From contig NC_068986.1 in the NCBI RefSeq assembly GCF_001194135.2, positions 26,163,742-26,216,499 on the forward strand: a DNA stretch of 52,758 nucleotides. The letters are read 5' to 3'. The notes below the pieces were generated by a model. The model was not told the origin of the DNA. It saw only the letters and a list, made by a program, of their open reading frames with translations, and searched no databases. How positions within the stretch are numbered: position 1 is the stretch's first letter; each line of letters opens with the position of its first letter. This DNA is from Octopus bimaculoides (Eukaryota). A program made the position numbers and the translations under genes. This document shows positions 798-52,655 of this stretch, piece after piece.

Positions 798-3700
798 GTA
801 TGCATGTGTATGCTCCTATATAACAAAAATATACTCTTTATATTTCCATAAACATTCTACTCAATATAAAGAAACAGAAATGGATTAAAGCAAGTACACA
901 ACATCAAGAGAAAAATGTTCTGAAAGAGGTCAAGTTTTAGAAGCTTGGGAATTCAAGATAAAACAGTTAAAAGACAGCATTTTAATGTGTTCAATCAGCA
1001 ACAGTGTGAAAAGTAACGTGCAAGGTCATGCATCAACAGTTAAAATACTGACAACATAGACTACAGTGCAAGGTCACCAGAGTTACAATATGCTACAAAC
1101 TGCATTTTTAACAGTGATGTGGTACCTGATATCGTTTACCAAAATGAAGAGTGCCCAAAGTCTGTAGAAAACAAAAAAACAAAAGGAATCAAGTCAAAGA
1201 CACAACACAAGGTGTAGACTAAATGAAATGAAGAGATCTACAGCATACGAGTGATATATTTGTTGACAAGAAGCCAAAACAAGTTCAACTGTATGATGCC
1301 TTGACAATATAGTATCACCAATTATAGTAATAAAGTGCATTATTTGTGAGATTTCATAAGACAACAACATGCACAAAGACAAATATTAGAACAAATTTCC
1401 TTTCTTGCTAAAATTTAAATAGATTTTTATGCCATAACATTATTATTATTTTTTTTTTTTTCACAAAAATATTTTCAGAATAATTTTGAGTAATTCTCAC
1501 GCTAATTAAACATGTATATAAAGAGAGTTTGGGACTTTATCCCACTGAAAGCTACAATAAAATTATAACATGGAAACACTAACTTGATAAGTAGGTTTGT
1601 TACTATTTGAAGAAGACCAAAAAACTTCATGCTAAGAAAGAGGTTTTTCAATGAATAACTCGTTCTATATGGTGTAATCACTAAAATTAAGGGGAACATA
1701 TGCGTGCCTTATGTGTGTATGCAAATACATTATGTGACTCTCTAAAATATAAAACTAGAATGGATGGACGACTGAAAAATTTGAAAGGTTAATGATGCAG
1801 TAATTATTCTTTTAAAAGTTGGTAAATAGAAAGAGCTGTACTAATATAAAATACATCCTTTGAATGATTTAATCATGAACAGTAAGACTTGTTCTGTGAA
1901 TATCAGTACCAAAAAGAAAATTGTAAATTAAACAATGAACTAAAATGAATTTTTTGCTTCTGAATTAGAGGAGTGTTCTATTGATTTGATTTGAGAAGTA
2001 TTTTAGGAAGCGACAATAATCAAAAGATCCAAGTGATAGAAATAGAAGATAATTACAAGGTTTGAAAAGTTCTGAAAGTCTAAAATTTTTATAGAAGTAA
2101 TAGTTGCACACAGCATATCATTTCATGTGACGAACTCCTCCAAGAATACATTTATGATGACTAATTTTTTAATATTTTGGTAAAACAAAACTAAAAACAA
2201 GATTTTAAAGAGTCAAGAAAATATGAAACAGTATCCCAATTTAATTAAACTGCTGATGAAAATGGAATAGTAAAGAAAAATAATATATTTCTTTATTTCA
2301 AAGGGAAATAACAAAAGAAACTCAGACCAATAATGAATAAAAACTTTAGGTTATAAACTAAGATCTAAGATTTTAATGTACATAATTTGAGACAGAAAAA
2401 GAGAAACCATCTCACTGATATTAGTGGGTCTCTGAAATTGTCTGAAATTGGTGCTTTAAAGAACTTTCAGGTATTTGCCTAAAATCAAATATGTTGGCTT
2501 TCCTACAAGGAAAAACAGAAATTTGTTTTAATGAAGACGACAAACAATAGGAATCAAATAGTAAGGAATTCTTAGTCAAGAGCAACTTGTTTTTGCAGTA
2601 ATCAAGACGGAGATTCCCATCCAGGTAAGTCGACTATTTGTTATATATCCAAATATAGTTAGAAATGAGTGCTGCAGTGTTTCAGAAAGAGAACAGTGGA
2701 GTGGTTTCTTCATCTTCATTTAGACAAGGTGACTATGATTTAAAAACAAGGGAAAATAAGAGTGGTGCATTCATTGGAACCCCAACATTAGCAATATAAC
2801 TGAAAGATACTATTGAGAATCAAAACTAAATTCCAGATAGTTGGTAAAAAGTACACCTACACTAAAAATGTGTATGTGTGTGTGTAAAATAAAAACCATA
2901 AATTCTAAAGGAATGTTTGTAGGACATTAAAAATAGGAATAATAATTTCTTAGGCACTAGAGTGAGAAGAAATAGGTACTCGACTCAGTACATTACTGAT
3001 ATTTATTTTATGTATTAATATGTCCACTAACTGTGTCCCACCTCTCCTTTCTCATATCTCTACCACTTGTATCCAACTACCTCTCCTTCCTCTTTCCTGT
3101 CAAATCACAATGCTTAAGAGGGAAGGGGTTGTGCTCTGACAACTTTCCTCACCCTCTCTGATTCTGTCATCACACACTTTTGACATGCTCTGACCCCTTA
3201 TCATCATCATCTTATCTCTCCTACACACACCACTCTACCCATCCATATAACATAGCACTGCATCTCTTCCTCCTTTCCTGATACCCTTATCATTCTAACT
3301 CTCTTTCACTAATCTCCTGACACTGCTTTTTCTCCTTCCTATTACTACTGGGCCATCTTATCACATCACTTTACCCACCATGTATAACTCAGGGTGCACT
3401 GCATTACTCCCCCATATCCTACCCCCTATCTCTCTCACACACATTTTCACTTTCCTTCCCATTACACCCTTCCCTAACAGTCTTTGTTAGTTGCTACCCC
3501 CCACCCTCTCAACAATAAACCTGTGTAATTCCAATACAATCTGTCTAAGACCCTGATGAACAGCGTAACCTATGCTGGCATAACAGACGGACTGAACCAC
3601 CCCATCACTGGTATCACCTACTCAACCTGCTCCATTATCTTGTCCACCCACCTCTCCTTCATACTAATAATACCTGACATTACTCTTCCCCTTCCATCTG

Positions 3701-4618
3701 TTTCTATTATACTCACTCCAACACTGTTCTCCGTTATTCTCTCCATCACCATCCTCTCATAATAAATCTGTTCAATCCAGTACAGAGGATCTTTCACATT
3801 GCAAACTGCAAGGTGACCCTCAACAGTGATGGTGCCACAAAAATCACCCATTACACATTGTAAAGGATTGGTAATTGATTCAAGTTGCGACAAGGCAAGG
3901 CTTGAGAATGTTCATTTGTCTTGCTAACAGCAATTCCACCTCTATAGTGCTGGTGCCATGAAAAACGGAGTCAGTACACACTGTAAAATGGTTAGTATTA
4001 TGCTAATACTGAGACATTGGAGCAAGATGTGATCCTCTAACCCAGTGAATCCTGTTAAACTATTCTACCCATAAAAGCTTAAAAGATGGATGGTTGATGA
4101 CGTAGTGGAAGAGATAAAAGAAACTTGCAATATTGATCTTACACTCTGAAGTCCAACAATCTACTCTAAATACTATTTGCATGAGGAACAGAGACATTTT
4201 AAAATCCATGCTGGAACAGACTGGCTTGGTTATATGACAATTAGTAATTATTGCTGTGTGAAAGTCAATTAATTAAATCTATAAATTAAACATCTATGAT
4301 GTTAAGGTGCTGAACTAGAGATCATATAATCATACTTCACACCTTAACATAAACATTGCACCGAATTACTGGGCAGTACCTATAACTGTCTCATAATTTC
4401 TGGCTGACAGCAGTATCACTTCTACTTCAAAGTTCAATTTTGAAGTGGGATGGGCAACTAAATGAAAAATAATTAATTGCATCTAAGTGAAAAATAATTG
4501 ATTTCTATCTAAAAAGTTGTGTTAGTTTCTCAACTTATTTCTTACTCACAACTTTACACTGAATAGAGTTATACATAACATTTTCATCTCTAGTTGCTAA
4601 GGATTTTATGCACAATTA

Positions 4619-12589: not shown

Positions 12590-12745
12590 CATCATCATCA
12601 ATTAACATCCGTTTTCCATGCTGGCATGGACTGGATAGTTTGACAGGAGCTGGTTAGGCAGAAGACCGCACCAGGCTTCACTGTCTGCTTCAGCAGGGTT
12701 TTTACAACTGAATGCCCTTCCTAACACCAACCACCTAACACTTCT
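12590..12745 (-). repeat. Short interspersed repeat, LINE-tail-like family (catcatcat...ttccatgctggcatgg...atgcccttcctaacaccaacc)
   Basis: Shares motifs with copies at ~17030, 19055, 24290, 33610, 42640 and 45180 in this window. Confidence 0.7.
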
Positions 12746-13454
12746 TATATTCTCATTAGATTTCTTTCTAGAAAATCTTGATGCCATTTGCAAAGAGTAC
12801 GAAGAATAATTCCATCAATATAGTTATGTAATGGAAACTTGAAAGCAGGGATTTTGGAATGGAGGCATGATAGCTGACAGTTTGGGGATACTCTATCATG
12901 ACAACTCAAGTAAGTTTATATGAGAAAAGATCATATTCACAATATTTAAAAAAAAACAACTTTTCTAATGTATATTCTCCACAAACATGTGTAGTGTATT
13001 TAATTGAATCTACCATATAAAGGTTAAAATTAATTATGTTTGAATTAATCAACTGTAGGCTGTTTCAGTTCAAGTGATATACAAATTCTGCAGAAAATGT
13101 TATTTAAAATACCGTAAATATTTTTAAAAAATGAGATTAAAAAAACTGTTACAGTCCAAAAATGCTAAAGAAAGATTTAGAATTCCTGCCAAGGATGCAA
13201 TTGGATGCATCTCTGAAGAAAAACTAGTTTATTTTTGTTGACCAGTGTTTGCTAAGATATAACAAGTACCTTTAATATTTATTCAATCAAAGGGGATCAT
13301 ATGAATGAAAAACATGTATCAGTATGAAATATACATAAAAATTCATTAAATGACAATATATTTCTCAATTTCTCACTCATTCTTATATAAGTTAAAACGT
13401 GAGATATTGACATTGTACAGTTCTATATTTAAGAGATGAAGAATTATTTTCATT

Positions 13455-13517
13455 ATTTACATTTGACGGATATTTGTCAACAAACAAGATGAGGACAAAT
13501 ATCCGTCAAATGTAAAT
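13455..13517. repeat. Perfect 24-bp inverted repeat (15-nt spacer) made of two ends of the Penelope-like family
   Basis: atttacatttgacggatatttgtc (13455-13478) / gacaaatatccgtcaaatgtaaat (13494-13517). Confidence 0.9.
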
Positions 13518-15950
13518 AGTGTAAATAATGTAAATTGACATTGTACTTAAACAAAAAGTTATAATAAAATAATGTTCTAAAACTACAATATATGAAATAC
13601 ATAAAATCATCGAGATCAAAGTGAATAGAAAAGCAAAACAAACAAAAAAAATAAAGCTAAAATACATCACAATGAATTTTAGGAAAATGATGAGACTGGT
13701 GCCATATGAATGCTGAAATTATGCTAATTAAAGGCTGTTTAAACAAAGTGCATGATTTTGACGCTGAGATAATGATGTGAAGACATTTTTGTGCCAATAA
13801 ATAAATAAATAAATAAATAGAACATGATGATATTCCAGAGTTTTGAACAAATAAATAAAATTAGTTTTGCTGAAAAATTTCAAATGTGAATATATGCATG
13901 CAAAATGATATAAAGACTACACATATTTAGTGAACAGATAATGCTGACAAAAGAAAACAGTAAAGAAGACACTTCAAAATTTGACACATTCTTACTATAT
14001 AAAACATTCTCACATATAAAAAGAAATTGAAATACTATCTAAATGAAAATTAAGGACAACAGGCCTTATAGACAGATAAGATAAAAGACTAGTAGCCAAT
14101 TCTTTAATCATACTGCAACATCAAATCTTGGTAATAGTTTACAAAATTTATTACTTAAAAGTTAAAAAGTATCAAGTAAAAGTGAAGAAAATACTATAAA
14201 AATGCATTTATTATTTTAGGCTAAATATATTTCCTTTTTTTAGACAGAAAAAATGTATGTATGTGAATGGATGGGCAAATATACATACATATGAGAGGAC
14301 ACATCGATTGTGCCTCTTGCAACAGGAAAGATACAACGTACATCAACAACAACTGCCTCAAAATGTCACACTACCTTTTCATGAGACATGACATTGTAGC
14401 CAAAAATATTTACAATGCTATTAGATGAAGGATTGTCTTGATGCTCATACAAAAAGCACAGCAGACCCATGAATCCACACCTTTAAAAATAAGGAATACT
14501 GTGGAGCAATCCAATAAAAACAACAAACTTAATGCAAAAACAACAGACCTCACACTGTTTCAGGGGACAGGGAACAACTATCATAATTTATTATAAGTTA
14601 GTTGCCCATAGAGATCAATGTCTCATCTAAAGTTGTAGAAAAGATCATCGATGGGGAACTGATGCAGAACTTACAACTTTTGTATCCTGGATCTAAATGT
14701 CTTCCTGTACTTATTATCATAGATGCATTGGATAATTAAACAACAGATTTGCATTAGAAAATAGAAGCCCAAAAGTGCTAGAACAAAGCAAACTCACTCA
14801 CACCCTTCAAATCCAATTAATTAGTGGATACAGTGAAGATTTGCAAAACATTCTAAAGATTCTTCATTTAAATTTCTTGGAATAAACATATATACACGAT
14901 CTTATATGTACATATAGTAAATACACATACACACACACACATTATCCAGATATACACACACATATATGCATTTATTAACTCATACTCATATTCACAAATT
15001 GCAGGATGTATCACGACTCAAACAAAGAATCCTTGTCACTTTTCTAGTAACTGACTTCAATTCTGCACAGAAAAATATACATAGATACACACAAGTTAGT
15101 ATGTATACATAATACATATACACGTGATCACTTAGCTGGTGCTTTCTAAAATACAATGGAAGAACCATATTTCTGGGTTAAATTTGAATTATGAAAGTTT
15201 CCATTTTGAAAGTTATGATAACCAGATGAAACTTCAGTTACTCTAGTCATGCTTACAGATGTATAAACAGATATGAGTTTGACAGAAAAGAAAAAGTAAC
15301 TTTCCTTCACTAAAGTTGCCATAGAAATACTTTTTACATGACCCTAAATATTTCACTTATTTAGCAAAATAAAATCTTTTAGTGTATTGAGGAAATACAT
15401 ATTAAAATGGTAATTTCAGAAGAGTGCAGTATGTTTACAACAAGTATAAAACAACTGATTTCTTGCATAAACACAACTTCTGATTTATGCATAAGTAAAT
15501 AAAGGTACAAAATTTTAATTCAGAATCTAAACAAAGAGGAGAGAATGCATCTTATGTTCCAAACAACTATACAAGTATAAAGTGATGGAAAATTAAAACC
15601 AGGAATGGAATGTTTCTTTCAAGCATTTTTAAGCTGACCTTAAAATTGACAAACAACTAATTAAGGCTAAATGAAAATTCAACAGAAATAATATTTCACA
15701 CATACACAACAAATAATTCAAAGACTCAAATGAAATGATTCTAAATGATAAGAATATCTTCCTTTTTTTTTTTTTCCTGTCCAGAATCAATTTAAAAGCA
15801 AATTAAGATTTTCAAAATATATTGGAAGACTTAAAAGTAGTGTTTATATTATAGTACAATAAAAATTGAAGGTAGGAGGATTCCAACAAGGTAATGCTAA
15901 GTTATCAGTTACAATGCAAATATATTTGAATTTTTTCTTTTTGTATTTTT

Positions 15951-16882: not shown

Positions 16883-17594
16883 ATCTACTAGGATCTCCTG
16901 GCACTTTTTTACCCATCTTTTATCATCCAAACTACATGTCCATACTCATTTGGTCCCCATTATTGCACAGTATGACTGATTGCTCTTATACTTAGTTTTC
17001 CTCTGAGCTTGTCTATACCATACCATCCATCATCATTTAATGTTCTCTTTCCATTCTGGCATGGGTTGGACAGTTTGGCAGTGACTAGCAAGCCAGAAGA
17101 CTGCACCAAACTGTCTGCTTTGGCATGGTTTCTAGGGTTGGATGCCCTTCCAAATGCCAACCACTTCACAGAGTGTACTGAACATTTTTTATATGGCCCC
17201 AGCAGCAGCAGCAAGATCACTGAGTAACTAGCAAGACCAGACCCCTCAACTGGCAGTGTGCAAGGTGCTGAGGGGTTAGAATACGAACAGAAGGTTAGAT
17301 ATAGGTATCTTAACATTATTCAGCCAGTAGAGTATACTTGCTTCATTTCTGTCCAAACTTGCACATCCTCTGTACTAAGTCCTCATTACTCCTTACAATG
17401 CAGCATCGCACTTTGTACACAAGCTCCATACAATCTACCCTTCACCAAAAACAAGACTTCTCTTGTCACCAGCAATAATAATAATAGCTTCCTGAACTTT
17501 TTCTACTCTGTTCTTACTCTAGCTACTATGCTTGCTGAGCATCCTCTTTCACTGCTAATTAGGTTACCAATATAGCAGAAGCTATTGACTACCT
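16883..17594 (-). mobile_element. Inverted continuation of the same RTE LINE, interrupted by a short LINE-tail-like repeat (~17020-17300)
   Basis: Minus strand reads VVNSFCYIGNLISSERGCSASIVARVRT, then KGRLYGACVQSAMLH, and later DKLRGKLSIRAISHTVQ. These are typical RTE post-RT segments. Confidence 0.7.
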
Positions 17595-19054
17595 TTATAG
17601 AGTTTCCTAGCATTGAAATGAATTTATCTTGCTACATAGATACATGAATATATATAAATCTAAAATAATGATAATTCTTTTCTTGAAAATCACTAAATGT
17701 ATTGAAAAATTTTTGGACTTCTGAAGCATAAGTATAATCAGTCCTGATATGAAGGTAATCTTCAAAGTGTGACTACAAGCTTAAATCTATATCTTTTCAT
17801 AATTATATTTCAAATATAGTTAATGATGATAACAATGATGATAAATTTCTTCAGTAAAATCATAAGAACACATACTGATGAGGTAAAATCACATAAAACA
17901 TGATAATGAAATATAACATATATGAACTTTTTTTATTAAGTGGCATACATTAGAGAAGTCTGCAACAAACAGATGAACGTTTAATGTGCAAATAGTTTGT
18001 TGGAAGAGATTTTATTGTTACCATAAGAGGTTTAGTTAATTATGTAAACTTTTATAAGGTGAAATTCATTCTTTATTATTTCTGTATATAAAATAATCTG
18101 CACATTTTTCAGTAATGAAGTAATCTATTTACTTATTTATTTCATACAGAATTAATTAAATTGCATAAAAAGCTAAAAAAAACCCAAAAAACAAAAGCAA
18201 AAAACTAATGATATGGTAAATGATCAATGAAGCCAGTGTTGTTAATATACCTGTTACAAACCAAAAATTATTCCTGAAAGCAAATATTACTTGTAAATGC
18301 TGTCATACTTCACTCACTCACTCGCACGCACACACACAACCCTTTTAAGAAAGGAAAATCTCAAAATTATACTATAATATATTTCTAAATGGGTTTTTTC
18401 TAAAAAATACATTTATATTAAAAATTATACATTTTAGATGCTATCAAAATAATGCATATGCCATAATGTCAGTAAATATCAAGAAAGCTGGATAATAACA
18501 ATTTCAATTCATTTAAACTAAAAGTAGTAAATACATTGTGAAATGGTTAACTGGTTATGATACCAATATACAAATACAAGAATTATCAATTCCAAGTTGA
18601 AACTAGAATGCATTTGTATTTTACAATAGTGTTTGTTAATAGAATACCTGTGAAATAAAACAAAAATATGAACTAAAGGAAATAACTGCAGTGGAACAAT
18701 GGCATGGATTTGCATATATTTGCTAAAAGTTATATTTTGAATGATGCAGCAAAAACTGTTTACCATTTTGCCTTTTAGTTGGAGAAAAAGTAAAAAGCCA
18801 AAAGTAATTCTCAGCAGAGCTCAAAGGGAGGGGAGATAATTTAAAGAAATTTATCTCGTTTCAGTCACTGAGTACGGACTAGATAGGGTTTGGGCAAAAC
18901 AAATCAACCCCAGTACTTATCTATTAAGTCTAGTACTCATTCTATCAGTATCTTCTACCAAACCACTAAGTTACGGGAATATAAAAAATCCAATACTGGT
19001 TGTCAGGAGATGGCAGGGGCCAAACATAAAGATACACACACACAATTATATATA

Positions 19055-19375
19055 TCATCATCATTGTTTAATGTCCGTCTTCCATGTATGCATGCATGAG
19101 CAGGACGGCTCACAGGAGTTGGCCAGGAAGAAAAACTACCCTATACCACTGTGTCTGTTTTGACAGGGCCTTTATGGCTGGATGCCCTTCCTAACACCAA
19201 CCATTTTTCAGAGTGGACTCAGTGCTTTTTATGTGGTACTAGCACAGGTAAGGTTAGTTTTTGCATGATTTTTACAGCTGGATGCCCTTCCAAATAACAA
19301 CCACTTTACAGTGTGGACTGCATGCTTTTTATGTGGCACCAGCACTGGCAGGGTTGCCAAGTAGTTTGCAAGACA
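19055..19375 (-). repeat. Same LINE-tail-like family, with an internal tandem duplication of the ctggatgcccttcc...accat/accac...agtggact unit
   Basis: The motif occurs at ~19178 and ~19277. It is followed by a GA-rich degenerate repeat body running to ~19900. Confidence 0.7.
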
Positions 19376-19965
19376 AGGAATTATGAGAGAGGCAGGGGCA
19401 TTTGAGGAGGGGAACTCATGTCAGAGGGTGACAGAGACAGAGAGCAGAAATGAGGTGTCTTGCTATAACGGAGGGGGCATTGGAGGAGATGATCCAGTAT
19501 CAGACGATGAAAGGTTAGAGTGTGACAGAGAAATAGGTGTCTTGCTATAGAGGAGGTACATGGTTACCCATTGAGAGAAAGAGGGAGAGATAGAAAGAGA
19601 GTGACCAAGAATGAGGGCAGAAATAGATGTGCTGCTAGAGAGGAGATATGTGGCTACCCAGCCAGAGGGAAGAGCAAGGGAAAGAAAGAGAGAGAGAGAG
19701 AGAGAGAGAGTAGGAACCAACAAAAATGTAAGAGAGGGAAATGAAGTGCCAGGGTAAACTCACAAGTAACAAGGATCAGAGCATAAATGTGATGGTAAAG
19801 AAAAGGGAAGTACGAAGGTAGTAATATACACAGTCAGGTGTTGCCAAGAAGGCACCAGTAGGGAGTGGGGATTGCAGTGACTGGCGAAAACCTGGGTAGA
19901 GGGCAGGAAAGGGGATATGAAGAGGAAATGTATATAATACACACACATACACATAATAGGCTTCT

Positions 19966-20100
19966 TTTCACTTTCCATCTACCAAATCTATTTACAAGGC
20001 TTTGGTCAGTCTGAGGTTATAGTAGAAGATACTTGTCCAAGATACCACACAGTGGGAATGAACATGAAACGATGAGGTATGGAAGCAAACTTCTTACACA
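19966..20100 (-). mobile_element. tRNA-derived SINE head, diverged copy
   Basis: ttccatctaccaaatc...aaggctttggtcagtctgaggttatagtagaagatacttg matches the copy at 46580-46660. Confidence 0.7.
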
Positions 20101-20396
20101 GCATGCTTGAGAATTTCGGATTTGTCAGTAAACAAAGAGATGGTAATGGGTATTGTAGGCTAACAAAGACTGGATTTTGCCGAGAGCATGTAAAGTATTG
20201 CATTCGTGAAATTTATATCCAATTTCTTAAAATTAAATCTCCTCTGAGGAAGTTGCTTACAATAACCGCTGATCTTTCTTTTCTTTCTCCTACTAAAAAG
20301 TAAATCTACCGTAATTCATACTATTGGCCCAAATGAGTCATTTCCCTTGGCTCATATTTTGTAATTATGCAAGCTCACTGGTTAAAACTTTTTTTT

Positions 20397-20573
20397 NNNN
20401 NNNNNNNNNNNNNNNNNNNNNNNNNNNNNNNNNNNNNNNNNNNNNNNNNNNNNNNNNNNNNNNNNNNNNNNNNNNNNNNNNNNNNNNNNNNNNNNNNNNN
20501 NNNNNNNNNNNNNNNNNNNNNNNNNNNNNNNNNNNNNNNNNNNNNNNNNNNNNNNNNNNNNNNNNNNNNNNNN
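20397..20573. other. Assembly gap
   Basis: N run. Confidence 0.99.
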
Positions 20574-20740
20574 GAAAATAAATTTCATGGTTATTCCTGT
20601 AAGACTTAAATATCTACCAAAACATTCAAGTTGGTATTTTCTGCAAGTCGTGTTACCTCAATGAACTTGACATATGAAAAACAAAAAAAAGTTCCAACAG
20701 AAGAGAGACTGGTATAGGGCTTTCCTATAAGTAGGTTATC

Positions 20741-21105
20741 TCCCTTGGCTAGGCGGCGCTCCATGTAGGCTAGATACTTCACCAAGAGGAGATATAAGCT
20801 TCTGCTTATTCCTGTCTGAAGTATCGCACGATACTTCAGACTTATCGTCCGATTAATTTACTTTGTTGACATTCTTTATCGACAGAATTTTTATACCTTT
20901 CAACCTTTCAGTAAAGTCCGCCTTTCTTCCAGTAACATACTGTCCATATAATCTTAAATATTTCTTTAATTCAGGCACAGTAAGTACTTCGATAGCTGAA
21001 TCATCGACCTGCTTTATAACCATGATAAGACGTAAAACAATAACAATAGCGTGGATAGTCTGCGGAAGTTTAATTGTCTACATGGAGCGCCGCCTAGCCA
21101 AGGGA
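20741..21105 (-). mobile_element. Putative non-autonomous DNA-transposon derivative with 28-bp inverted repeats and a SAP-domain ORF
   Basis: TCCCTTGGCTAGGCGGCGCTCCATGTAG (20741-20768) is perfectly inverted at 21078-21105. About 15 CpGs in 365 bp against a CpG-poor background. No target-site duplication was recognised. Confidence 0.7.
20853..21023 (-). CDS. 56-aa ORF with a SAP-like domain (MVIKQVDDSAIEVLTVPELKKYLRLYGQYVTGRKADFTERLKGIKILSIKNVNKVN); probably a truncated remnant
   Basis: Manual translation. LTVxELKxxLRxxGxxxxGxKxDxxxRL matches the SAP consensus pattern. It is shorter than any ORF in the supplied track. Confidence 0.6.
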   Translation of the reverse strand: MVIKQVDDSAIEVLTVPELKKYLRLYGQYVTGRKADFTERLKGIKILSIKNVNKVN

Positions 21106-22257
21106 ACCACTTTCTGTAATTAAGGGTAATGACATTTTGAGTGTGTATTTCTGATTTCTGGGGTGAATAAATATTTTTTGTGAAATTCTCAACTTTTTTC
21201 ACTGAGATTCACTTACAACTGCAACTAGGTTTTTGTTGTCTTTCTCCAATTACAATGCAAATTTTAAATATGAAAATTCTTCTAATCAAAACAAAATTTC
21301 ACTTACACCATATATGAGAACAATAAGAGAAGCACTTCACTTTACTCCTTTATTATTTTTTTTACATAGCAATGCAGTGCACTCGCACACTCTGAATATA
21401 TTGAAACACGTAGAAAATATTTGGAGTTAACCCAGAATTGCTTTACACAACGAAGGGAAACAACTCGGTCATCTAGCTTTGACGATTACCGGAATACCTT
21501 TTGTAGACACTATTTTACAAAAAGTATTTCTCTTTGTCAAATCCCATTTAATGCTTAAAGCTTCTGCAAGTCTTAAAAACAGTATATTTTCAGCAAAATA
21601 ATATATGGAACTAATAATAATGTATGTATGAATAATATATGGATCTAACCCCCAAATTCTGTCATCCTGATTCAAAATACTCTTGTAGGACAGCCTTTCA
21701 TTTATACCTTATCATAATATAATGAAATAGAGGATGTCTTAAAAAGGCAACAATGGGAATAAAGTTTCAGACTAGCTCTTCATTCAAAGTAATCCCATAC
21801 AGTATTGGTATTGGTCATATGACTGATGTATGAACAATATATACACCTATATTAGGTCATGTTCAACAATGAATATACAGCAGCAGGATAGTTGAAATAC
21901 TAAAATTTAATTACTTAAAAGAATCACAAGATATTCCAAAGCCTGTCAAACACTGTTAAAATAGGAAATCAGGAAGTACTACATCAGGTAAGTAATAAAA
22001 AGTATGTCTTGAATAAGTCCCACACCTTCAATCCTATTGATATTCATTTATTAAATAACCTTGTTTATAATTACAGAGTAATGTATTTATTCCTGGAGCA
22101 AAAAAATAATATAGCACCTATAAAGGTCATTTGTGTGTGTGTGTGTAAAATACTTGGACACCATTTTCTAGTGAATTTAAAATCCAAATAAAATAGAAAA
22201 ATAATATGTAAATGAAATAACTTTTAACATGAAAGAAATTATGTCAAGTATCTTCAC

Positions 22258-22409
22258 CTTAATTCGTCCAACAGCTTCTTGTGCTTGTATCATTCTCATT
22301 GGTTTTGATGGTTGCCCTTCAGATATTAATTGTGTAGAACCAAGGTAACGTGCTCGAAATAACACACCTTCTATCAATACTGCAGGATTGTCCGGATCAT
22401 TTATGCAAA
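22258..22409 (-). CDS. APBA1: APBA/X11 exon, first part of PTB domain (V)CINDPDNPAVLIEGVLFRARYLGSTQLISEGQPSKPMRMIQAQEAVGRIK
   Basis: Acceptor ttttatttggcag|TT and donor AAG|gtgaag. 152 nt, phase 1 to 0. Closely resembles the lin-10/X11 PTB motifs YLGSTQL and QAQEAVxRIK. Confidence 0.95.
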
Positions 22410-25400
22410 CTGCCAAATAAAATAAGAGTTTACAATCATTATGATACATTATTCATGTAAAATTCATGTACTTGCTGCTTATTTACAATAAGCAACAAAA
22501 TACACTGCAAATTAAAAAAAAAGAAAATATACAACAATCCCAAACTGATATCAAAACTAAAAAAAAGCAAAGACCAATTCACTGAAATAAATTATCACAA
22601 TAAAATAGAAAAAAGTAACTGTCTAATCTCTAAAAATAATCAAATTTTTGTAAGGAATTAAAAAAAAAAAAAATTTTTTTAAATCAAAATCTGGTTGAAA
22701 GTTTCAAACCATTCTGAAAAATCTGGATCTAAAATTATAACATTTTCAAATCTGATAGACTATTTACCATCTGTTGAATGAAGAAAACATTTTATAGAAA
22801 TAAAATAACATATATATATACACACACACATTAAAAATAAATAATATATACACTAAAAACAAAAGAAAGTAAAGAAAATTAACTTACAAATCTTAATTAT
22901 AATATTTATATACCCAAATGTCAAAGAAAAAAGAATGGAGTATGTAAAACCAAAAAGAAAACAAATAGAAAATGAAACAAAACCCCATCTTGTAAGCTTC
23001 AATAAAAACCATATAACCTTTTACCCCTTAAATCAGGACTTTTATTGTATCAGATAGAAAATTGTTAATCCTTTGGATCAATTTCTATAACTTAATATAC
23101 AATTATGAAACTTTATTGACTTATGAAAAAAAAAGAAAAGCAAAGAAAATATAAACTAGATAGTATTATATTGTATGTTTTACTACCAGAAATCTCATCC
23201 ATATGATAGGATAAATGATAAGTCATATATTCAAAATAATTTGTTATTAAATTAAAAGAGAATATTTAAATACAGTTCACTAACACAAACTGAACATCAA
23301 TTAAATAACACAAACAATAAAAATGATGTTATTAAACTAAACCTTTTCATTACTTCACTCATATTTCAAGTGCAAAAAGAAAAAAAATCTTATAAATGGA
23401 AATGTTTTTTTTTTCTTTTAAGGAATTAGAGGACTGGAAATATTTATGACCTTTTTGCAGCACCCACAAGACTAATGGGAGAAACGTGGGGGCAGAGAGC
23501 ATGACTTGTGGCTCATTACAGTAGGGAGTAGCAATTAGATCGTTTTGCAATTAAGATATGATTCTGAAACAAGATAGTGTTAAAAAAAATAACAAACAAC
23601 AATCATACAAATAATGTTTAGGAACAAGGTGATTGAATTTATTTATTTCATATTCATACGACTGCTATTTATGTTAAAGGTTAAATTAGGAAAAAAAAAA
23701 TTGAAATAACTATATCACTTGGCGTAATTAATTCACTATATATTAATAATGAAGCACTAAGTCTAAATGTTATAAACACTGAATTAATACATTGCCATCA
23801 CTTATATAGTTTTATTGTAAATATATCATTTGGTAAAAATAATGTCCTAAGAATCCTGGAATTTTCAACATGAAAGAAAACACTGTATAAACAGCTGAAT
23901 ATCTAAAACTCTATACTTTAACAAAGTTTTGCAACTAAACAGAACTTTCATATCATTCTTAAATAATGGTACACTATTTAATTTCAGTTATTAAATGGAA
24001 GATAGGCGGTTCTATGGATATGGAGTTCACTCCATAACCATGTGGTTTGGGGTTCAATCTCTCAGCATGACACCCTGAGCAAATGTCTTCCACTATAGTC
24101 TAAGACTGACCATACGCCTTATATGGAGACTGTATGGAAACCTACTGCATAAAATGTCTATGAGCATGTGCTTGCAAATGTTGATATTTCATGGCCTCAT
24201 TATCATAGCCTGAGCAAAAAGGTGATGTTTACATTCTCTACTGATAACAGCATATTGGTCTGTAATTTCAAATCAAGATCCCTCATTGGAAGCATGTAAG
24301 GATTAGTAACAGAAATGTCATCCAGCTACAAAATTATGTCTCAATTAAGTCTCCATCCAACCTATGCTAGCATGGAAAAACATGTAAAGCAAGAGATATG
24401 TATTTAGGTGTGTATGTATACAGACACACACATACACACACTCTTGTATCTATATATAAATACTCTCAGAGAGTAATTCATGAAGCATAAATCAATTCCA
24501 CTAGCACCAATGGAAGCACTGAAAACAAAAATATAATGGAATGCCTGAAGGAAGTCTTAAGCAACAAAGACTCTGAAGAGGTAGACCAAAATAAATAAAT
24601 AAAAGTATATCAAGCAAAGAGCTAAAGAGATTTATTTTTCCTAAATTGTGAACCCACATTGTGAGAATACATTATTTTATCTTAAATGATGCTGAGTAAG
24701 GTGCAAAGTATTTTTTCTAATAATATGTAGCAATGATTTAGACTGTCCAGAAAAACAGATTACAGCAATCTTCTTGAATAATTTCTTAGAAAAAACTGAA
24801 TAATTCAAAAACTTTCTACTTCTTCAATAACAGAAGATCCTGATGACTCTCTTACAGAAAAAAAGTGCTTCTCCAAAGAAATTTACAAGAGATTACTTTT
24901 CTTCTCAATAATTTCCTTTTATGCTACCATCTTGCTGTCTTTTATCTTAGCTAGAAAGCCTGTCAGAAAGTGTGGGTGTGTTTTCAATTACTAATCTATA
25001 ATTATTTATTCTTAAAATCTTTAATTTGCTATTTTAAATTTGAGTGAACAAGTGTATGCGCATGTGTAGATGTATGAAGCCCGAAAATCGTGTTGGATTA
25101 TTTCCCTTTAATGATATGTGCCAAACCAACAATAAACAAAATGATCACATGGATTGAAATTGCTCATGAATTTAATTGATATGAATGATGTTGCTGATGA
25201 CAGATATGGTAATGATATTAGTGATTAATTTCATGCAACTATCTAATTCATGTAGGGAAGCATATCCACAGAGAGATCAACTTTCAACAGTCATAATACA
25301 TTGTTCTCACTTTTTCTTTCTATTACACAATCTTTCATATCTATGTTTAACATTCACAATGACAAAATTACATCTTGAACAGGTTTCTTTTTTTTTTTTG

Positions 25401-31400: not shown

Positions 31401-34400
31401 CTTAAGATTGCACCATTTCAAAAAATATTTTGATACTTAGAAACAAAGTTTCTTTTTGAATAATTACTCACCCTCCTTAGCACGTGATCGCCTTTTCTCA
31501 GCCTGAAAAGACAACAAAATTGCATAAGTTACAAAACTATTTTCTAATAAATAAAAGAACCAAGATATATAAAACTTTCATTAACATAATACATATTTCT
31601 TTTGGATAATATATATTTCTCACAATAACTTAAAGCTACAAAGCCGACGGGAAGGTGCTTAGTGAACTGAACTGACACTAATATATGGTTAGTACTTATT
31701 TTCTTGAATTAAAAAGTATTAAAGGCACTAATTAGTGAGATCTGAATTCAGAATAAAACTGAACACTATAAAGCATTAAATCTACTGAAAAGAAACACAA
31801 TTAAGATCAATGAATGTGAATGATGGAGAGAGCTAGAGTTGTTATCAAAATGTAACAAGTACAATCCATTAAGAATAATACATTTCACTTGAAACTAGAA
31901 TGAAAATACATAATAAAAGTTTAAAAAAAAAACTCTAGAAACCACTGTCATAAATGGGGAGTAAAAAAACAAACTGAATATAGTTTTGTAAATGCGTATG
32001 GATCTAATTTTCAGCAATAACTTCAGTTTTACAAATAAGCAAACAATGTTTGTTGAAATAATCTAAATGTAATTAGTGATGTAATGTAGTTACAGTGAAG
32101 ATTTATACAACAGATTGTAGACATCTAATATACACATAAGCAACAAATAAACTACATGTATACAAACACATATACGCACTTTCAAAAACACCATTATCAC
32201 CATATTTATAGTCACTGACCATATGATCCCCATTTTAATTAATTTTACAATGGTTTTAATATGTTGGCATGTATTAAATGATATATATATCATAGGTCAA
32301 TTCATATGTAAGTACATATCTAAAGACTTCTTTCAGTTGCTTATGTCAGAAAATAAAAGCACCTTAACACAAATGATAATTCTTTAAACAGAACTATAAT
32401 TTATAATCCTTACAATTCAATTTTACTCATATTTGCTTGGAAAAAAGTCAATGATAAAATTACAAACTACATCAGTGAAGCTTTATGATAAAGTTCTTTG
32501 AAATTGAAAACAGATTTTATTGGCAACAAAATATTTTTTAAGTTGATTGTATTTAACTTATCAATAGTGTCTACTTCATCATCATTATTCTCCATAGTAC
32601 TATTATTTTCACTATCCTAATATTTGGTTTCATGTCACTCTCCAAATCTGACAAGCTAGCAATATAACACTGTTCTTTTTAGACTGAATTCTTTACAACC
32701 AAAAATCTGAGTATATTCAGTTTTGGTAAGTAATGATTTCCTGGATAACTGCTAATTATTTTGCTAATCATTCAACTAATTTCCACAAAGTTTATTTGTT
32801 AAAATTACCCACTGGGATTGTTCTTAACAATACATACATAAGATTTTTAAAAAAAATAAAACAATGCTGGTTATAATGAAATTGCCACTTATAAAGTTTC
32901 CAAACAAAAGGAGTACAATAATCTTTCATTTATATGTCCAGAGCTTCTTACTATTGTTTCAACGTATTTATTCAAAGTAAATTACTACAGTGCATGATTC
33001 TGAGGATATAAAAGGACAGTGAAATTCTTGTGGAAAATAAATAAGTTACAGAAAATTCCACTCAAATTCTTTAAATCATAACTAAGAGAACAAAGAAAAA
33101 AAAAGTGAAACTATCTGATACACAATAATAGACACTTTATTTCTGGTATATAGAAACCAAATCTTTATATAAGTGTGAAAATATCAATAAAAAATACACT
33201 AACACAACATGAAAATTAAAAAAAAAAACTACAATACACTAATTTAATTTATATATTTCAAGTGACAATAAAACACTCCTAGTCCATGCTGTGGAGTTGT
33301 TGGTGATAGAGAGAGTATCCATCTGCAAAAACCATGCCAAACTGAAGGAGCAAGGGAAGGAAGAGTAGAACCGACTCTTTAGTCCCACTGCTAACAATCA
33401 AGACTGTTTAGTCACACTAGACAATTGCTCTAGTGTTTGCAGCATGAAAAAATACATTCAGTTCACGCTGTTAAGTGGTTGATGATAAGAAGGACATCAA
33501 GCCATAAAAATCATGCCAAAAATACCATGACATACAGCATAACAAATATTGCCAGCTTTTCTCTGTTGCTGTGCATGCCAAATGACAAAGGACCATAACA
33601 AGAGACAAGACGCTGAGACCAATAGAATCCATGCCAGCATGGAAAAATGGATGGATAGTGAATGATGGTGATAATGATGATGACAATGATGATGGTGATG
33701 ATATGCAAAACTGCTTTGCTTTAAAATGATACTAATGGGGTTACTACATATTTGTCTTTTCTAAACAATTATGTATGAAGTGCAATATTACATAGTAGTG
33801 AAACATGGACACTCAATGCAGAATATGTGCAAAAGAAATGAAGCAAGCATGCTCTGTTGGATGTATAATGTTAATGTGCATGACAAATGGAGTACAAATG
33901 AGCTGAGAAAAAACACAAGAAACCAGATGAAAGGGAAAGGATATGTGATGCATACGGAGAATACCAGAAGAGATGTAGAGATGTAGTAGTGGCATTTGGT
34001 AGTGGGAAAGAGACATTAATGGTAGCTACATATTTGCAAGATAAGAGAGAATGAATAATGAAATGATCATTATTAAGAGAATGTGATGTATGTCAATGAT
34101 AGGGGACCTATAAAGAGTGAGTGGTAGCTTGCAATATACAAGGGGTGATGTTAACAGGTAAGAAACAGTACAAGAGATGGATATTTGATAATAATTTAGA
34201 TGACTCTCTCTCTTAATCTTTAAAGCCTTTGTAAAGGGGTTATTAACAAAAAAACATCAGAACTAATTCAATATTTATAAAGTAAGATTTCAATATCTTT
34301 GTTATTGCTATTTTTGATATATGTATGCATTATAAGTATGCATACATTGTACATACGTATTTATTAATGGTTCTGAAACAGTACACAACAGGAGGTATCT

Positions 34401-46538: not shown

Positions 46539-46570
<32 letters not shown>

Positions 46571-49046
46571 GACAGGCTTCTTTCAGTTTCCATCTACCAA
46601 ATCCACTCACAAGGCTTTGGTCGGCCTGAGGCTATAGTGGAAGACACTTGCCCAAGGTGCCACGCAGTGGGACTGAACCCAGAACCATGTGGTTGGTAAG
46701 CAAGCCACTCCTGCGCCTATATATTTCTCTAGTATCTTTGTTATTCTTAGTATATGTGATGGGCTGTTATGATGGTCCCAAGTTCATATTATTTAGCATT
46801 AGAATGTGCAGTATAGTAAAGCTGGCATTTGTGTACCAACAAAGTGTTTAATATTTGTAATAGCAGACAGAAGTCATGATGATAATGATATATCATGTTA
46901 ATAATAGTGATTATGGCTTTGGTGGTGGTGTTAATGATAAAGCTACCATCACAAATGATAATGAATGGTGGTGATGAATTGTGATGATGAATCATGTGGG
47001 TGATCATGATGATTCTCAATTGTAAGAAAATTTCAAGCTATATTTATTGCTATGAACATTAATGTATGATTTATTATCATTTCACTTTCCAGATGTTACA
47101 AGTGGGTTTTTTTTTTTTTACTATTATCTGTTTTTTTTTTTACATAAAAAAAAAAGCTACAAGCAAACACAGATAATATATTGTCCATAGGACAAATATT
47201 AGATGAACACATCATAATGTATTTCTAATTAAACTCAGAAATTTTCATCAAGCCATATTAATTAAAATCATTACATGAAAAACATTAATTATAAATGTCT
47301 ATATAAAAGAATAATTTTATACGAAATCACTTTAGGGAACTTACTATGATTTCATTCACATTTAGGAACTGAATATTTCAGCATAAACCAACAGACTTAC
47401 TGACTTGTACTATACTAAGTCACCTTAGTCTTTTAGTAGTCAAAACGTTCCATGTGAAATATACTCTTAATGAATAATAATATTATTGTTAGAAAGAAGG
47501 AATTTAAATCATTTGCGGAAGTTACTAAGCATGCAAAATATACAGTATAAATATACAGTATAAACTCTCAGTCCAACAACACAACAAGCAATGAATGAAT
47601 TACAATGACATGTGGTAAAATCATGCAAAGCAGTTGTCTATAATTTTCAATAAACCTTTCACTTCAAATTCCTATTGATGAGTTGCCAAATCTGCAACAT
47701 TTAAGTAGATGTAATCGAAATTATCAAACACTGGCTTATTTATAACATTAAGAACATCTTAATTTATTCTGCAGTGAACTATTAATAAAAAAAAATGCTT
47801 TATTTATTTGGCTATTTCTATAAATAAAGAAAGCTAAATGTTGCCAATAAGTAGTCTAATCAATAATAAGAGTACAACTAAGTATTTATCGTGTATGTAC
47901 TGAACAAATTAAATACACTACTTATGTATCTTTAGAATGACACTATGATGTTTGAAGACTAGACTAGGAAATTCAAGCAGTTATCTTGTGAATTTTATAG
48001 ATACAAAAACAGGTTTGATAATATTGAAGGAAAGAGGCAGTTTTGATTTACAGTAATAAGTGCATTCATTAATCAAGTCTAAATTAAAAAAAAAAATAAT
48101 GAATATCAAATTGTTTTGTAAACAATTAGTTGCATGATTCACATTCAATAACCTTAATTCATTCCATTTGACTTCATAATTGTTCAAAATACCTAAGAAT
48201 GATAAAATACATTAGTAATAATTTTACTATAAATGATAAACTAAATTTATGGGAGAATTGATTCCTTCTTATATCTAATCAAACTTTCCATGTGGTTTAA
48301 AAAACTGCTAAATAAAACTAACAGTGTAGTTTGATTAAATACATATTGAGTCTTCTATCTTTTCCACATCACATTCTTCTTAAAGACTTCATATTCTAAC
48401 ATGAAATTTCCAAATGCTTAAGCTGAAGATCCATCTAAACTTATATAATTCATTACAGCTTATTCAATAGATAAAAAGAAAACACTCCAAAATATAAAGC
48501 TTTTAAGAAATTCATTAAATTAATGTTGCATATATTACATTAGTCGTTATTTCTTTACAATTAAACTTCACTTCTATTAATATATACGTAAGTCAAGACT
48601 TCTGAAATGTTTACATATACTAAAGAATGAATACATGGAGCATGAAAATAAAATATTATAAAAGTTTTTAATGTGAAACAAACTGAATGAAGCACCCAAA
48701 TTTTATCTCTGATTCTAAACAATATTTCCTTTCCTCCTCATCTGTTAATTACCTAAAATATATTTTGATAAAATATTTCAGAAATATAAGCTAACTTAGA
48801 CTGTAATTTGAAAATTTCATTGAAAAAAACATTTGAAAATGTATCTGGATAGTAAGTAAATGTAGTTGAATATTAGATGACATGAATATGAAATAAGCTA
48901 TTTTATATTTGTATGAAAATTCTTAGAAGAATATTGCAAACATTAATGTTTACAAAAACTTGGCAACTTAAGGTAAAAAAAATAAAAAAAAGAATTAAAG
49001 GTTAATGACCAAAATAATGATTGTAATCATTTTTAGATTTTGATGA

Positions 49047-49086
<40 letters not shown>

Positions 49087-49776
49087 GTGATTTCAAGACA
49101 AACATTTTTCTCATTTAACCTAAAATACATCACAAATACAACACTACAAAAAAGTGTTAGATAAAGTAGGTTAAAAGCTACCATAAGCCAAAGAAATATG
49201 ATAGATAGAGATGAGTAACAAATTCTAGTTAAATATTTTTTAAAAGGACATTAGATATTAAAATTAATTAATTAAGAGAAAGGAATTATAACTTAAAACA
49301 TTTTTTTCTAAAATGATTATTAGCTATGACTGTAATATAAACAAGAATTAGTATCTAGAGATGTTTGAAGATAATAGGGTTGGGGGATGAAATTCTCCTT
49401 ATATCTAAGTCAGTACCTCCAGGAGTAGCTGTCTTGACATAGGCAGTTGTACTATTGGATGGAGAAACAACTTCATCACTTCCACTTTCCTCAGATGAAC
49501 CCTGTGATCCCGAGTAGTACTTGGTTGGGACAGACGTTCGCTGACATGCACTAGAATTAGGAGCACCATGTGCAGAGGCATGCGAAACATCGTTATAAAA
49601 CTGGTCTTTATCCTTGCTCAGTGACGACAGATCACTGGAGACTTTTTTGGAAACTGTGCGATAAACAGATTTCTCAATGCCTTCATCCTTCGGAACCGAC
49701 GCATATTTTCTCCCCTTGTTGCGCCGAACATAACACATATCTTCATTATCTTCATACTCATCATCGGTTTCATAAC
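22258..49776 (-). CDS. APBA1: X11/Mint/lin-10 (APBA-family) adaptor gene, partial multi-exon CDS: low-complexity N-terminal region plus first PTB exon
   Basis: Six AG/GT-bounded exons join in compatible phases (1-1, 1-1, 1-0, 0-0, 0-1, 1-0) with no stop codons. The chain ends in the family-diagnostic PTB sequence [43 protein letters not shown]. The symbol denotes the family; assigning a vertebrate paralog is not meaningful here. Confidence 0.88.
24005..24150 (+). mobile_element. tRNA-derived SINE head, diverged copy
   Basis: ggggttcaatctc...gagcaaatgtcttccactatagtctaagactgacc is the reverse complement of the family above. Confidence 0.6.
28519..29092. mobile_element. Cluster of three copies of a second SINE family (+, -, + tail)
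   Basis: Shared aagttcaaa...ttcatcctttc core. The 33-bp tail ctggccttgWgccaaaatttgaaatcaatatta occurs at 28695-28727 and 29060-29092 with 1 mismatch. Confidence 0.75.
29182..29261. mobile_element. 80-bp Tc1/mariner-type MITE
   Basis: Perfect 17-bp TIRs CAGGGTGGCCCAAAATT / AATTTTGGGCCACCCTG, flanked by TA on both sides. Confidence 0.85.
31472..31502 (-). CDS. APBA1: APBA/X11 31-nt exon, AEKRRSRAKE
   Basis: ttttgttgtcttttcag|GCTGAG...GAGG|gtgagt. Phase 0 to 1, which supplies the phase change needed to reach the PTB exon. Confidence 0.85.
33310..33700 (+). repeat. LINE-tail-like repeat, sense copy ending ccatgccagcatggaaaa...(GAT)n
   Basis: Reverse complement of the motifs at 12590 and 19055. 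Confidence 0.6.
33770..33980 (+). mobile_element. Decayed RTE LINE 3' coding fragment
   Basis: Degenerate translation AILHSSETWTLNAE followed by RNEASMLCWMYNVNVHDKWSTNELRK. Confidence 0.65.
35130..35147 (-). CDS. APBA1: APBA/X11 18-nt microexon, PVKKNM (candidate cassette)
   Basis: ttttttgtctcttag|CCTGTGAAGAAGAATATG|gtgaga. Phase 0-0, 381 nt downstream of the 110-nt exon. Confidence 0.7.
35529..35638 (-). CDS. APBA1: APBA/X11 exon (N)FDTDEETDKLLQKQYQTDQHVDIPELSKPPINLGAQ
   Basis: atttttccttag|AT and CAA|gtgagt. 110 nt, phase 1 to 0, open frame. Confidence 0.85.
41688..41762 (-). CDS. APBA1: APBA/X11 exon (V)NSISSTDYDDEDGDSPVQFRCPAT
   Basis: ttctctttctccag|TA and CCA|gtgagt. 75 nt, phase 1-1, CpG-containing coding-like sequence. 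Confidence 0.85.
42636..42740 (+). repeat. LINE-tail-like repeat fragment
   Basis: gggttggcaacaggaagagcatctggcc...ccatgccagcatggaag. Confidence 0.6.
44519..44600. repeat. Imperfect (GAT)n microsatellite
   Basis: Direct reading. Confidence 0.9.
45808..46070 (-). mobile_element. Decayed RTE-like LINE 3' end with a (GAT)n-type tail
   Basis: Reverse complement resembles the RTE C-terminus and ends in gcatggcaaaataatcattaaaataatgatggtggtgatg. Confidence 0.45.
46217..46710 (-). mobile_element. tRNA-derived SINE (gapped), with internal (TA)n
   Basis: Reverse complement has a box-B-like ggttcagtcccac head followed by ggcaccttgggcaagtgtcttccactatagcc...gatttggtagatggaaactgaaagaagcc. Related copies lie at ~19966 and ~24005. 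Confidence 0.75.
46277..46538. other. Assembly gap inside the SINE microsatellite
   Basis: N run. Confidence 0.99.
49049..49082. repeat. 34-nt poly(A) run
   Basis: Direct reading. Confidence 0.95.
49417..49776 (-). CDS. APBA1: APBA/X11 N-terminal acidic, Ser-rich exon YETDDEYEDNEDMCY...AYVKTATPG
   Basis: Longest gap-free ORF in the track. Acceptor ttcatttatttctag|GT. The last GT before the stop is GAG|gtactg, giving 360 nt, phase 1-1. The donor is non-optimal, so the 3' boundary is less certain. Confidence 0.75.
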
Positions 49777-52499: not shown

Positions 52500-52655
52500 A
52501 TTTTCCTATAACTATTTTAACATTATTTACATTATTTACATTTGACGGATATTTGTCCTCATTTTGTTTGTTGTTAACATAACGTTTCGGCTGATATACC
52601 CTCCAGCCTTTGTCAGGTGTCTTGGGGAAATTTCGAACCTGGGTTCTCATTCCTA
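52500..52655 (-). mobile_element. Penelope-like terminal-repeat fragment containing a degenerate hammerhead motif
   Basis: Minus strand reads GACAC-CTGACAA-AGGCTG-GAGGGTATAT-CAGCC-GAAACGTT-ATGTT. It shares ttacatttgacggatatttgtc with the 13455 hairpin. Confidence 0.6.

Follow-up and report, generated by a model that had tools for sequence, protein, structure and literature searches.

ISL2EU elements are a branch of the PIF/Harbinger DNA transposons (the 'PHIS' superfamily), of which Repbase lists families from oyster, fish and further animals (Han et al. 2014, PMC4122938; 2015, PMC4482050). They are defined by a transposase that combines DDE, HTH and THAP domains, a second open reading frame (ORF) that encodes a YqaJ exonuclease domain, duplication of a 2-bp AT at the target site (target-site duplication, TSD), a distribution restricted to animals and a length of ~4.8 kb (PMC4482050, PMC4122938, PMC9179366). 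The TSD in particular is given as AT (PMC4482050; PMC4122938).

Here we analyzed a window of 52,758 nucleotides from Octopus bimaculoides (contig NC_068986.1, positions 26,163,742 to 26,216,499 of the forward strand), which has a G+C content of ~30% and is strongly CpG-depleted. A sequence-only reading had drawn attention to a CpG-rich unit at 20741–21105 of the window, flanked by inverted repeats and containing a small ORF, and had taken it for a non-autonomous element derived from a DNA transposon. Our results agree with that general assignment, through homology to an ISL2EU parent and by way of the unit's terminal inverted repeats (TIRs), and they change several of its particulars. We put at roughly 0.9 the probability that the unit is a dead, non-autonomous, internally deleted and one-end-damaged ISL2EU (PIF/Harbinger, 'PHIS') copy of O. 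bimaculoides. Among the papers we searched, none pairs 'ISL2EU' with 'Octopus' or 'PIF-ISL2EU' with 'cephalopod'.

Results

Ends of the unit

The two arms of the inverted pair, at 20741–20768 (+ strand) and 21078–21105 (− strand), are 28 nt each, separated by a spacer of 309 nt, and their complementarity is 100%, exactly as the sequence-only reading had described them. When up to three mismatches are allowed, the 28-mer occurs at these two sites only in the window, and shuffled sequences give an expectation of 0.00. A 177-N assembly gap at 20397–20573 lies only 142 nt from the true left end of the unit (see below), and one might therefore attribute the repeat to chance or to an assembly artefact beside the gap. 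We give this virtually no credence: shuffling predicts 0.00 occurrences by chance, no gap breaks the sequence of the unit, and its arms and interior find homologues in many proteins and in an independent contig, L001, a 1990-nt Logan contig from run ERR12120951 that encodes the protein P0020 (77% identical to P0012). As a separate observation, the stretch at 20337–20352 (GTCATTTCCCTTGGCT), just before the gap, matches the junction between the outer and inner parts of the TIR (20735–20750) at 14 of 16 positions, and may be a solo TIR fragment or a chance resemblance.

The left boundary had been placed at 20741, the start of the repeat, but end alignments show that the real left end is at 20716. 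Leftward of the repeat, homology to L001, Sinanodonta and Mya extends for a further 25 nt. The true terminus begins AGGGCTTTCCTATAAG..., is preceded by AT and matches the ends of bivalve ISL2EU elements; it is laid out as AGGGCTTTCCTATAAGTAGGTTATC / TCCCTTGGCTAGGCGGCGCT..., where the slash separates the outer 25 nt from the inner part. The outer part of the left TIR (20716–20740, + strand; AGGGCTTTCCTATAAGTAGGTTATC) has ~83% identity to L001 1–25 by a hand count from the alignment, and the TIRs of Sinanodonta (AGGGCATTCCAATAAG...) and Mya (TGTCCTTTCCGATAAC...) can be aligned with it as well. The inner part, which is the left arm of the repeat, is homologous to L001 26–53 and to the Sinanodonta TIR. 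The right arm is the inner 28 nt of the right TIR. The AT dinucleotide at 20714–20715, a putative TSD copy, abuts the left terminus and stands in the same place as the AT at the ISL2EU ends of Mya, Sinanodonta and Haliotis, although it is weak evidence on its own, AT being frequent where A+T makes up 70% of the DNA.

From these alignments, the 28-nt repeat is the inner half of a TIR of ~53 nt, which explains why the apparent ends of the unit fit no TSD rule. The earlier verdict that the termini match neither the TA rule of mariner nor the TTAA rule of piggyBac was thus passed on sequences that are not termini, the left end lying 25 nt further out and being flanked by AT.

The right side differs from this pattern. 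An intact element would carry the reverse complement of 20716–20740 followed by AT at 21106–21133, and this outer TIR is absent, leaving a non-canonical right flank. Local alignment of the reverse-complemented flank with outer TIRs was no better than with shuffles (p = 0.14–0.81), and a second copy of the outer TIR was found nowhere in the window. We also considered a diverged TIR that would end ...GTAATGAC / AT at 21133 and rejected it, because its alignment was likewise no better than that of shuffled sequences. An AT is accordingly seen on the left side only, and since the right terminus is non-canonical, no matching TSD copy can be assigned.

Read in direct instead of inverted orientation, this flank (ACCACTTTCTGTAATTAAGGGTAATGAC) bears some likeness to the outer TIR (L001 AGCACTTTCCGATAAGGTAGTTATC), at a marginal p of ~0.03–0.05 relative to shuffles. 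The likeness could stem from a rearrangement in place or from what is left of a neighbouring copy, or it could be due to chance.

The interior and its octopus relatives

The minus-strand ORF of 56 aa that had been reported at 20853–21023 is present as described, running from ATG to TAA, and the frame does remain open past the TAA, where it reads SDDKSEVSCDTSDRNKQKLISPLGEVS. The ORF call, Pfam and an alignment of sister copies together identify it as the native start and SAP motif of an ISL2EU SAP-SWIM-YqaJ protein. When the part beyond the stop is included, the peptide matches at least 17 proteins, all from O. bimaculoides and most of them named 'SAP domain-containing protein', with 63–96% identity over the aligned part and 83–96% in most cases; a second protein search returned further O. 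bimaculoides matches beyond the 17. With copy number estimated in this way from UniRef gene models, the family appears to be multi-copy in O. bimaculoides; no second copy of the unit was found within the window. The sister gene models contain frameshifts and differing internal gaps, and one sister tail (LKIFVSCRISQIM) resembles, by inspection, an out-of-frame version of KDLCKLPNFTEND. The frameshifts and differing gaps indicate that these models are decaying transposon copies and not a gene family.

The SAP motif noted earlier was examined with Pfam. The window peptide scores 19.2 bits (E = 9.7e-4) against SAP (PF02037), below the gathering score of 23.9, whereas P0001, P0003 and P0004, which are 88–92% identical to it, score 24.0–25.4 bits and pass. 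The motif is therefore upheld by close relatives, and the lower score of this copy (19.2 versus 24–25 bits) is due to substitutions such as L37F. Relative to the family consensus the window copy also carries D2V, L6V, M49I and a D-to-C change at residue 65. Its codon 57 is a premature TAA at a position where the aligned sister copies that reach it (P0001–P0010) have Ser. An AlphaFold2 model built from an 18-sequence alignment predicts helices at residues 16–27 and 34–42 with low confidence (pLDDT 50), and we dropped a fold search from this model because its pLDDT was too poor.

Behind the premature stop, 20769–20852 (− strand) is a remnant of exon 1, codons ~58–88, whose translation (SDDKSEVSCDTSDRNKQKLISPLGEVS) aligns with the sister copies. 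The window frame ends ...GEV, ~30 in-frame codons after the TAA, where the sister copies run on as ...GEVLPD..., and DNA homology to L001 ends after GGTGAAGT. Judging from these breaks in homology, the internal-deletion junction lies at 20768/20769, with codon ~88 joined to the inner part of the far TIR. Within the remnant, a perfect 13-nt hairpin at 20814–20841 (GTCTGAAGTATCG ca CGATACTTCAGAC) corresponds to a 15-nt insertion of five codons (SEVSD), seen as a 15-nt gap in L001. The SEVSD insertion is present in P0001–P0006, the main O. bimaculoides subfamily, and absent from P0012, P0015 and P0020. A search of Rfam with 20574–21400 gave no match at E ≤ 1, and the hairpins thus represent no known RNA family.

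On the other side of the ORF, the native 5' leader from the TIR to the ATG (21024–21077, − strand) aligns with L001 54–111. It contains the subterminal motif AAACTTCCGCAGACTA (21072–21056), and the subterminal sequence AACTTCCGnGGnCTA, which the leader contains, is shared with L001 and conserved at the Mya and Sinanodonta ends. Counted from the inner TIR, the ATG is 82 nt in; adding back the missing outer 25 nt would put it ~107 nt from a canonical end, as compared with 111 nt in L001.

The parent gene

The organization of the intact gene can be read from L001, which contains the homologous terminus, a 5' leader, an ATG at 112, exon 1 (SAP ... CNCTAG), an intron (GG/GTAAGA ... TTTTTCAG, with the slash at the splice junction) and exon 2. 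Exon 2 supplies the rest of a SWIM finger (CNCTAGQGEACNH) and continues into a PD-(D/E)XK exonuclease. Pfam assigns to the spliced protein the domains YqaJ (71.8 bits), Viral_alk_exo (62.2 bits) and SAP (24.2 bits). Longer, exonuclease-bearing copies, for which the sequence-only reading had advised a search, do therefore exist, both in L001 and in O. bimaculoides itself, where P0170 and P0171 (= XP_014784938.1) reach the YqaJ domain. The window copy lacks this domain, which has been deleted, and its ORF is the N-terminus of the YqaJ protein; the suggestion that it is the truncated beginning of a longer protein was correct, the protein being SAP-SWIM-YqaJ.

An exhaustive HMMER search with P0012 returned 154 representatives, with full-length SAP-(SWIM)-YqaJ proteins of 554–599 aa among the top matches, and the SAP domains of full-length relatives score 25–41 bits. 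A word-index search traced homologues to bivalve, gastropod, amphioxus and cnidarian sources.

Two-gene elements in other animals

A homologous SAP-YqaJ gene of 565–627 aa adjoins a convergent gene with HTH_Tnp_4 and DDE_Tnp_4 domains in nine of nine loci, six from Mya arenaria and one each from Sinanodonta woodiana, Haliotis rubra and Branchiostoma; the pairing with a transposase was read in these species and not in octopus. A THAP domain is recorded in seven of the nine loci; two Mya gene models, which are shorter, and the Branchiostoma locus lack it. The six Mya copies (L002–L007) are ~6.5 kb long and 99.9% identical, and they end TGTCCTTTCCGATAAC ... GGACA, with flanks WAT/TGTCC...GGACA/ATW (slashes here and below mark element boundaries). 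The Sinanodonta element (L008 7901–12464) is 4564 bp long, has TIRs beginning AGGGCATTCCAATAAG... and is flanked as TAT/AGGGC...GCCCT/ATA, and related ends with AT are found in Haliotis and amphioxus. By a hand count from the alignment, window positions 20716–20760 are 78% identical to the Sinanodonta TIR (L008 7901–7945), and the TIR core C(T/A)TTCC is common to the window, Mya and L001 and occurs in Haliotis as well.

Several further observations were made on these elements and their ends. In Mya, L003 contains two copies arranged head-to-tail with a single AT shared between them, and both gene models are called in the six 99.9% identical copies; the ISL2EU family looks recently or currently active in this soft-shell clam. 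The terminal ~45 nt are 78% identical between octopus and Sinanodonta, whereas the encoded SAP-YqaJ proteins are only ~54% identical. That the ends are better kept than the protein could be due to constraint from transposase binding and protein–DNA co-evolution, or to horizontal transfer among molluscs. A first metagenome scan gave no matches; a second gave two (L009 and L010), both within an unrelated ORF and without the inner TIR, and we discarded them as chance.

These elements bear directly on the identity of the parent, which had been thought to be a poorly described, possibly Zisupton-like family. Zisupton is a DNA transposon of aquatic animals that is said to carry SWIM/SAP-type motifs, and the SAP and SWIM-like motifs of the parent protein would be in keeping with a derivative of a Zisupton/KDZ-type element or of some other transposon, as yet undescribed, with a SAP accessory protein. 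We regard such an origin as highly improbable. Nine loci from four species pair the gene with a PIF/Harbinger-type transposase that has DDE_Tnp_4 and HTH_Tnp_4 domains (and THAP in seven), the duplication in the relatives is AT, and the left TIR of the window aligns with those same elements. Because the relatives combine the features published for ISL2EU, namely a (THAP-)DDE transposase, a YqaJ ORF and AT duplications, the Zisupton idea is left without support, and the parent belongs instead to a group that is already catalogued.

The Viral_alk_exo (PF01771) score of 62.2 bits on the L001 protein might alternatively suggest that the unit is a fragment of an endogenous virus. There is next to no chance of this, in our judgment, because the domain occurs in TIR-bounded two-gene elements with a DDE transposase, and with AT duplications in those whose ends were mapped (4.5–6.5 kb), and because viral genes are absent from the vicinity; viral contigs scanned for the TIR gave no matches either. 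The match to a 'viral alkaline exonuclease' is a relationship between domains alone, and a viral genome is not involved.

CpG content and genomic setting

The CpG richness of the unit, estimated earlier at about 15 CpGs in a CpG-depleted intron, proved accurate: 20741–21105 contains 15 CpGs, with an observed/expected ratio (o/e) of 1.04 as compared with 0.19 for the whole window. This is the highest count of all 365-bp windows (mean 1.5, 99th percentile 9), and the runner-up is a coding exon near 49400–49790. The first 400 nt of L001 are also CpG-rich (o/e 1.07, as compared with 0.58 over the whole contig), which indicates that the 5' end of the family is intrinsically so. Where L001 alone has CpGs, 7 of 11 are TG or CA in the window. 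The CpG richness of the unit is therefore inherited from the 5' end of its parent and partly decayed, and it does not mark a regulatory island. As the CpGs have not yet fallen to the level of the intron, their retention suggests a comparatively recent insertion, in line with the earlier description of the unit as young.

An exon at ~22180–22330 (− strand) encodes the start of a PID/PTB domain (Pfam PID, 30.6 bits), and its sequence (FRARYLGSTQL...) looks X11/Mint-like. A CpG-rich host exon encoding an acidic, Ser-rich sequence lies upstream at 49390–49795 (− strand), which places the unit inside the body of the PID gene in sense orientation. A motif search of the window for the next X11/Mint exon downstream found nothing convincing, and it is from the one upstream PID exon that we judge the unit to be probably intronic in a PID-domain (X11/Mint-like) gene. 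Coding exons of the host gene retain CpGs, whereas its introns have an o/e of ~0.19.

Other repeats occur near the unit and elsewhere in the window. Three sets of old dispersed repeats, 71–82% identical, are probably SINE-like elements: the first at 19928–20088, 46541–46703 and 24036–24120, the second at 12593–12740 and 17028–17170, and the third at 17112–17204, 19152–19355 and 33449–33524. An 87-nt near-palindromic unit at 13443–13534, with a second, partial copy at 52517–52573 (95–97% identity), is possibly a foldback element or a MITE. A perfect palindrome of ~32 nt lies at 761–793, and the 1-kb stretches 3001–4000 and 19001–20000 have G+C contents of 0.43–0.45 with GC skews of −0.47 and +0.28, respectively.

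Coding potential of the truncated copy

The sequence-only reading had raised the possibility that the unit still expresses a stand-alone SAP peptide. This would make the unit a functional micro-protein gene, encoding either a truncated repressor of its own family, comparable to KP of the P element, or a peptide co-opted by the host. The copy does keep its native ATG, with 82 nt of native leader, a SAP helix-loop-helix is predicted (helices 16–27 and 34–42, pLDDT 50), and several sister gene models likewise end shortly after the SAP motif. Nevertheless, at the codon of the stop the aligned sister copies that extend this far encode Ser, the SAP score of 19.2 bits falls short of the 24–25 bits of the family through substitutions such as L37F, and the copy sits in a host gene body in sense orientation. 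We consider a functional micro-protein gene very improbable, and the suggested peptide expression is unsupported, given that the TAA is a mutated Ser codon and that the outer right TIR is missing.

A related proposal concerns the family more broadly: SAP-only ISL2EU deletion copies, if transcribed from the native leader, might make a short TIR- or DNA-binding peptide that dampens transposition of the family. Such a system would parallel, in this superfamily, the way KP represses P elements, but on our analysis it is a long shot.

Discussion

Our results support a model in which the octopus unit is what remains of a full ISL2EU element. The ancestor would have been 4.5–6.5 kb long, with TIRs beginning (A/T)G..C(T/A)TTCC and two convergent genes, a SAP-SWIM-YqaJ gene starting ~85–110 nt from one end and a THAP-HTH-DDE transposase gene at the other. 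It would have inserted by cut-and-paste, with a 2-bp AT duplication. An internal deletion then took all sequence between codon ~88 of the exonuclease gene and a point 53 nt short of the far terminus, including the rest of the exonuclease gene and, presumably, the transposase gene. We assume that this deletion arose, as it does in other cut-and-paste families, when repair of an excision gap was interrupted. It left the 5' leader, the first 88 codons with the SAP motif, and the far TIR. Two later changes would complete the history: the mutation of a Ser codon to TAA, giving the 56-aa ORF, and the disappearance of 25 outer nt from the near (right) TIR. With this outer segment missing, the copy can most likely no longer be mobilised, and we regard it as most likely inert.

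The value of these findings lies mostly in annotation, as they explain a set of O. bimaculoides 'SAP domain-containing protein' gene models as transposon fragments. They also place an ISL2EU lineage in a cephalopod, the ISL2EU group itself being already catalogued, and they reveal a constant SAP–SWIM–YqaJ layout of the second ISL2EU protein over molluscs, amphioxus and cnidarians.

Among known systems, Zisupton/KDZ elements have a Zisupton-type transposase and an 8-bp TSD, whereas the transposase and target duplication of the relatives described here are of the PIF/Harbinger-ISL2EU type. The window copy resembles MITEs and internally deleted DNA transposons in that it is short, bears TIRs, derives from an autonomous element by internal deletion and belongs to a multi-copy family. 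It differs from classical MITEs, which lack a coding remnant, in keeping ~88 codons of the parent gene and in having one incomplete TIR. With respect to ISL2EU, the window copy departs from the published description in being a deletion derivative of ~390–418 nt without a transposase or an exonuclease domain and with a damaged right end, and its TIR starts AGGGC as opposed to 'usually GG'. In the remaining respects the agreement is close: the parent protein carries YqaJ, its partner in the relatives is a DDE and HTH transposase (seven of the nine loci add THAP), AT stands at the left end of the window copy and at both ends in the relatives, and the relatives are 4.5–6.5 kb long, against a published mean of ~4.8 kb, and restricted to animals.
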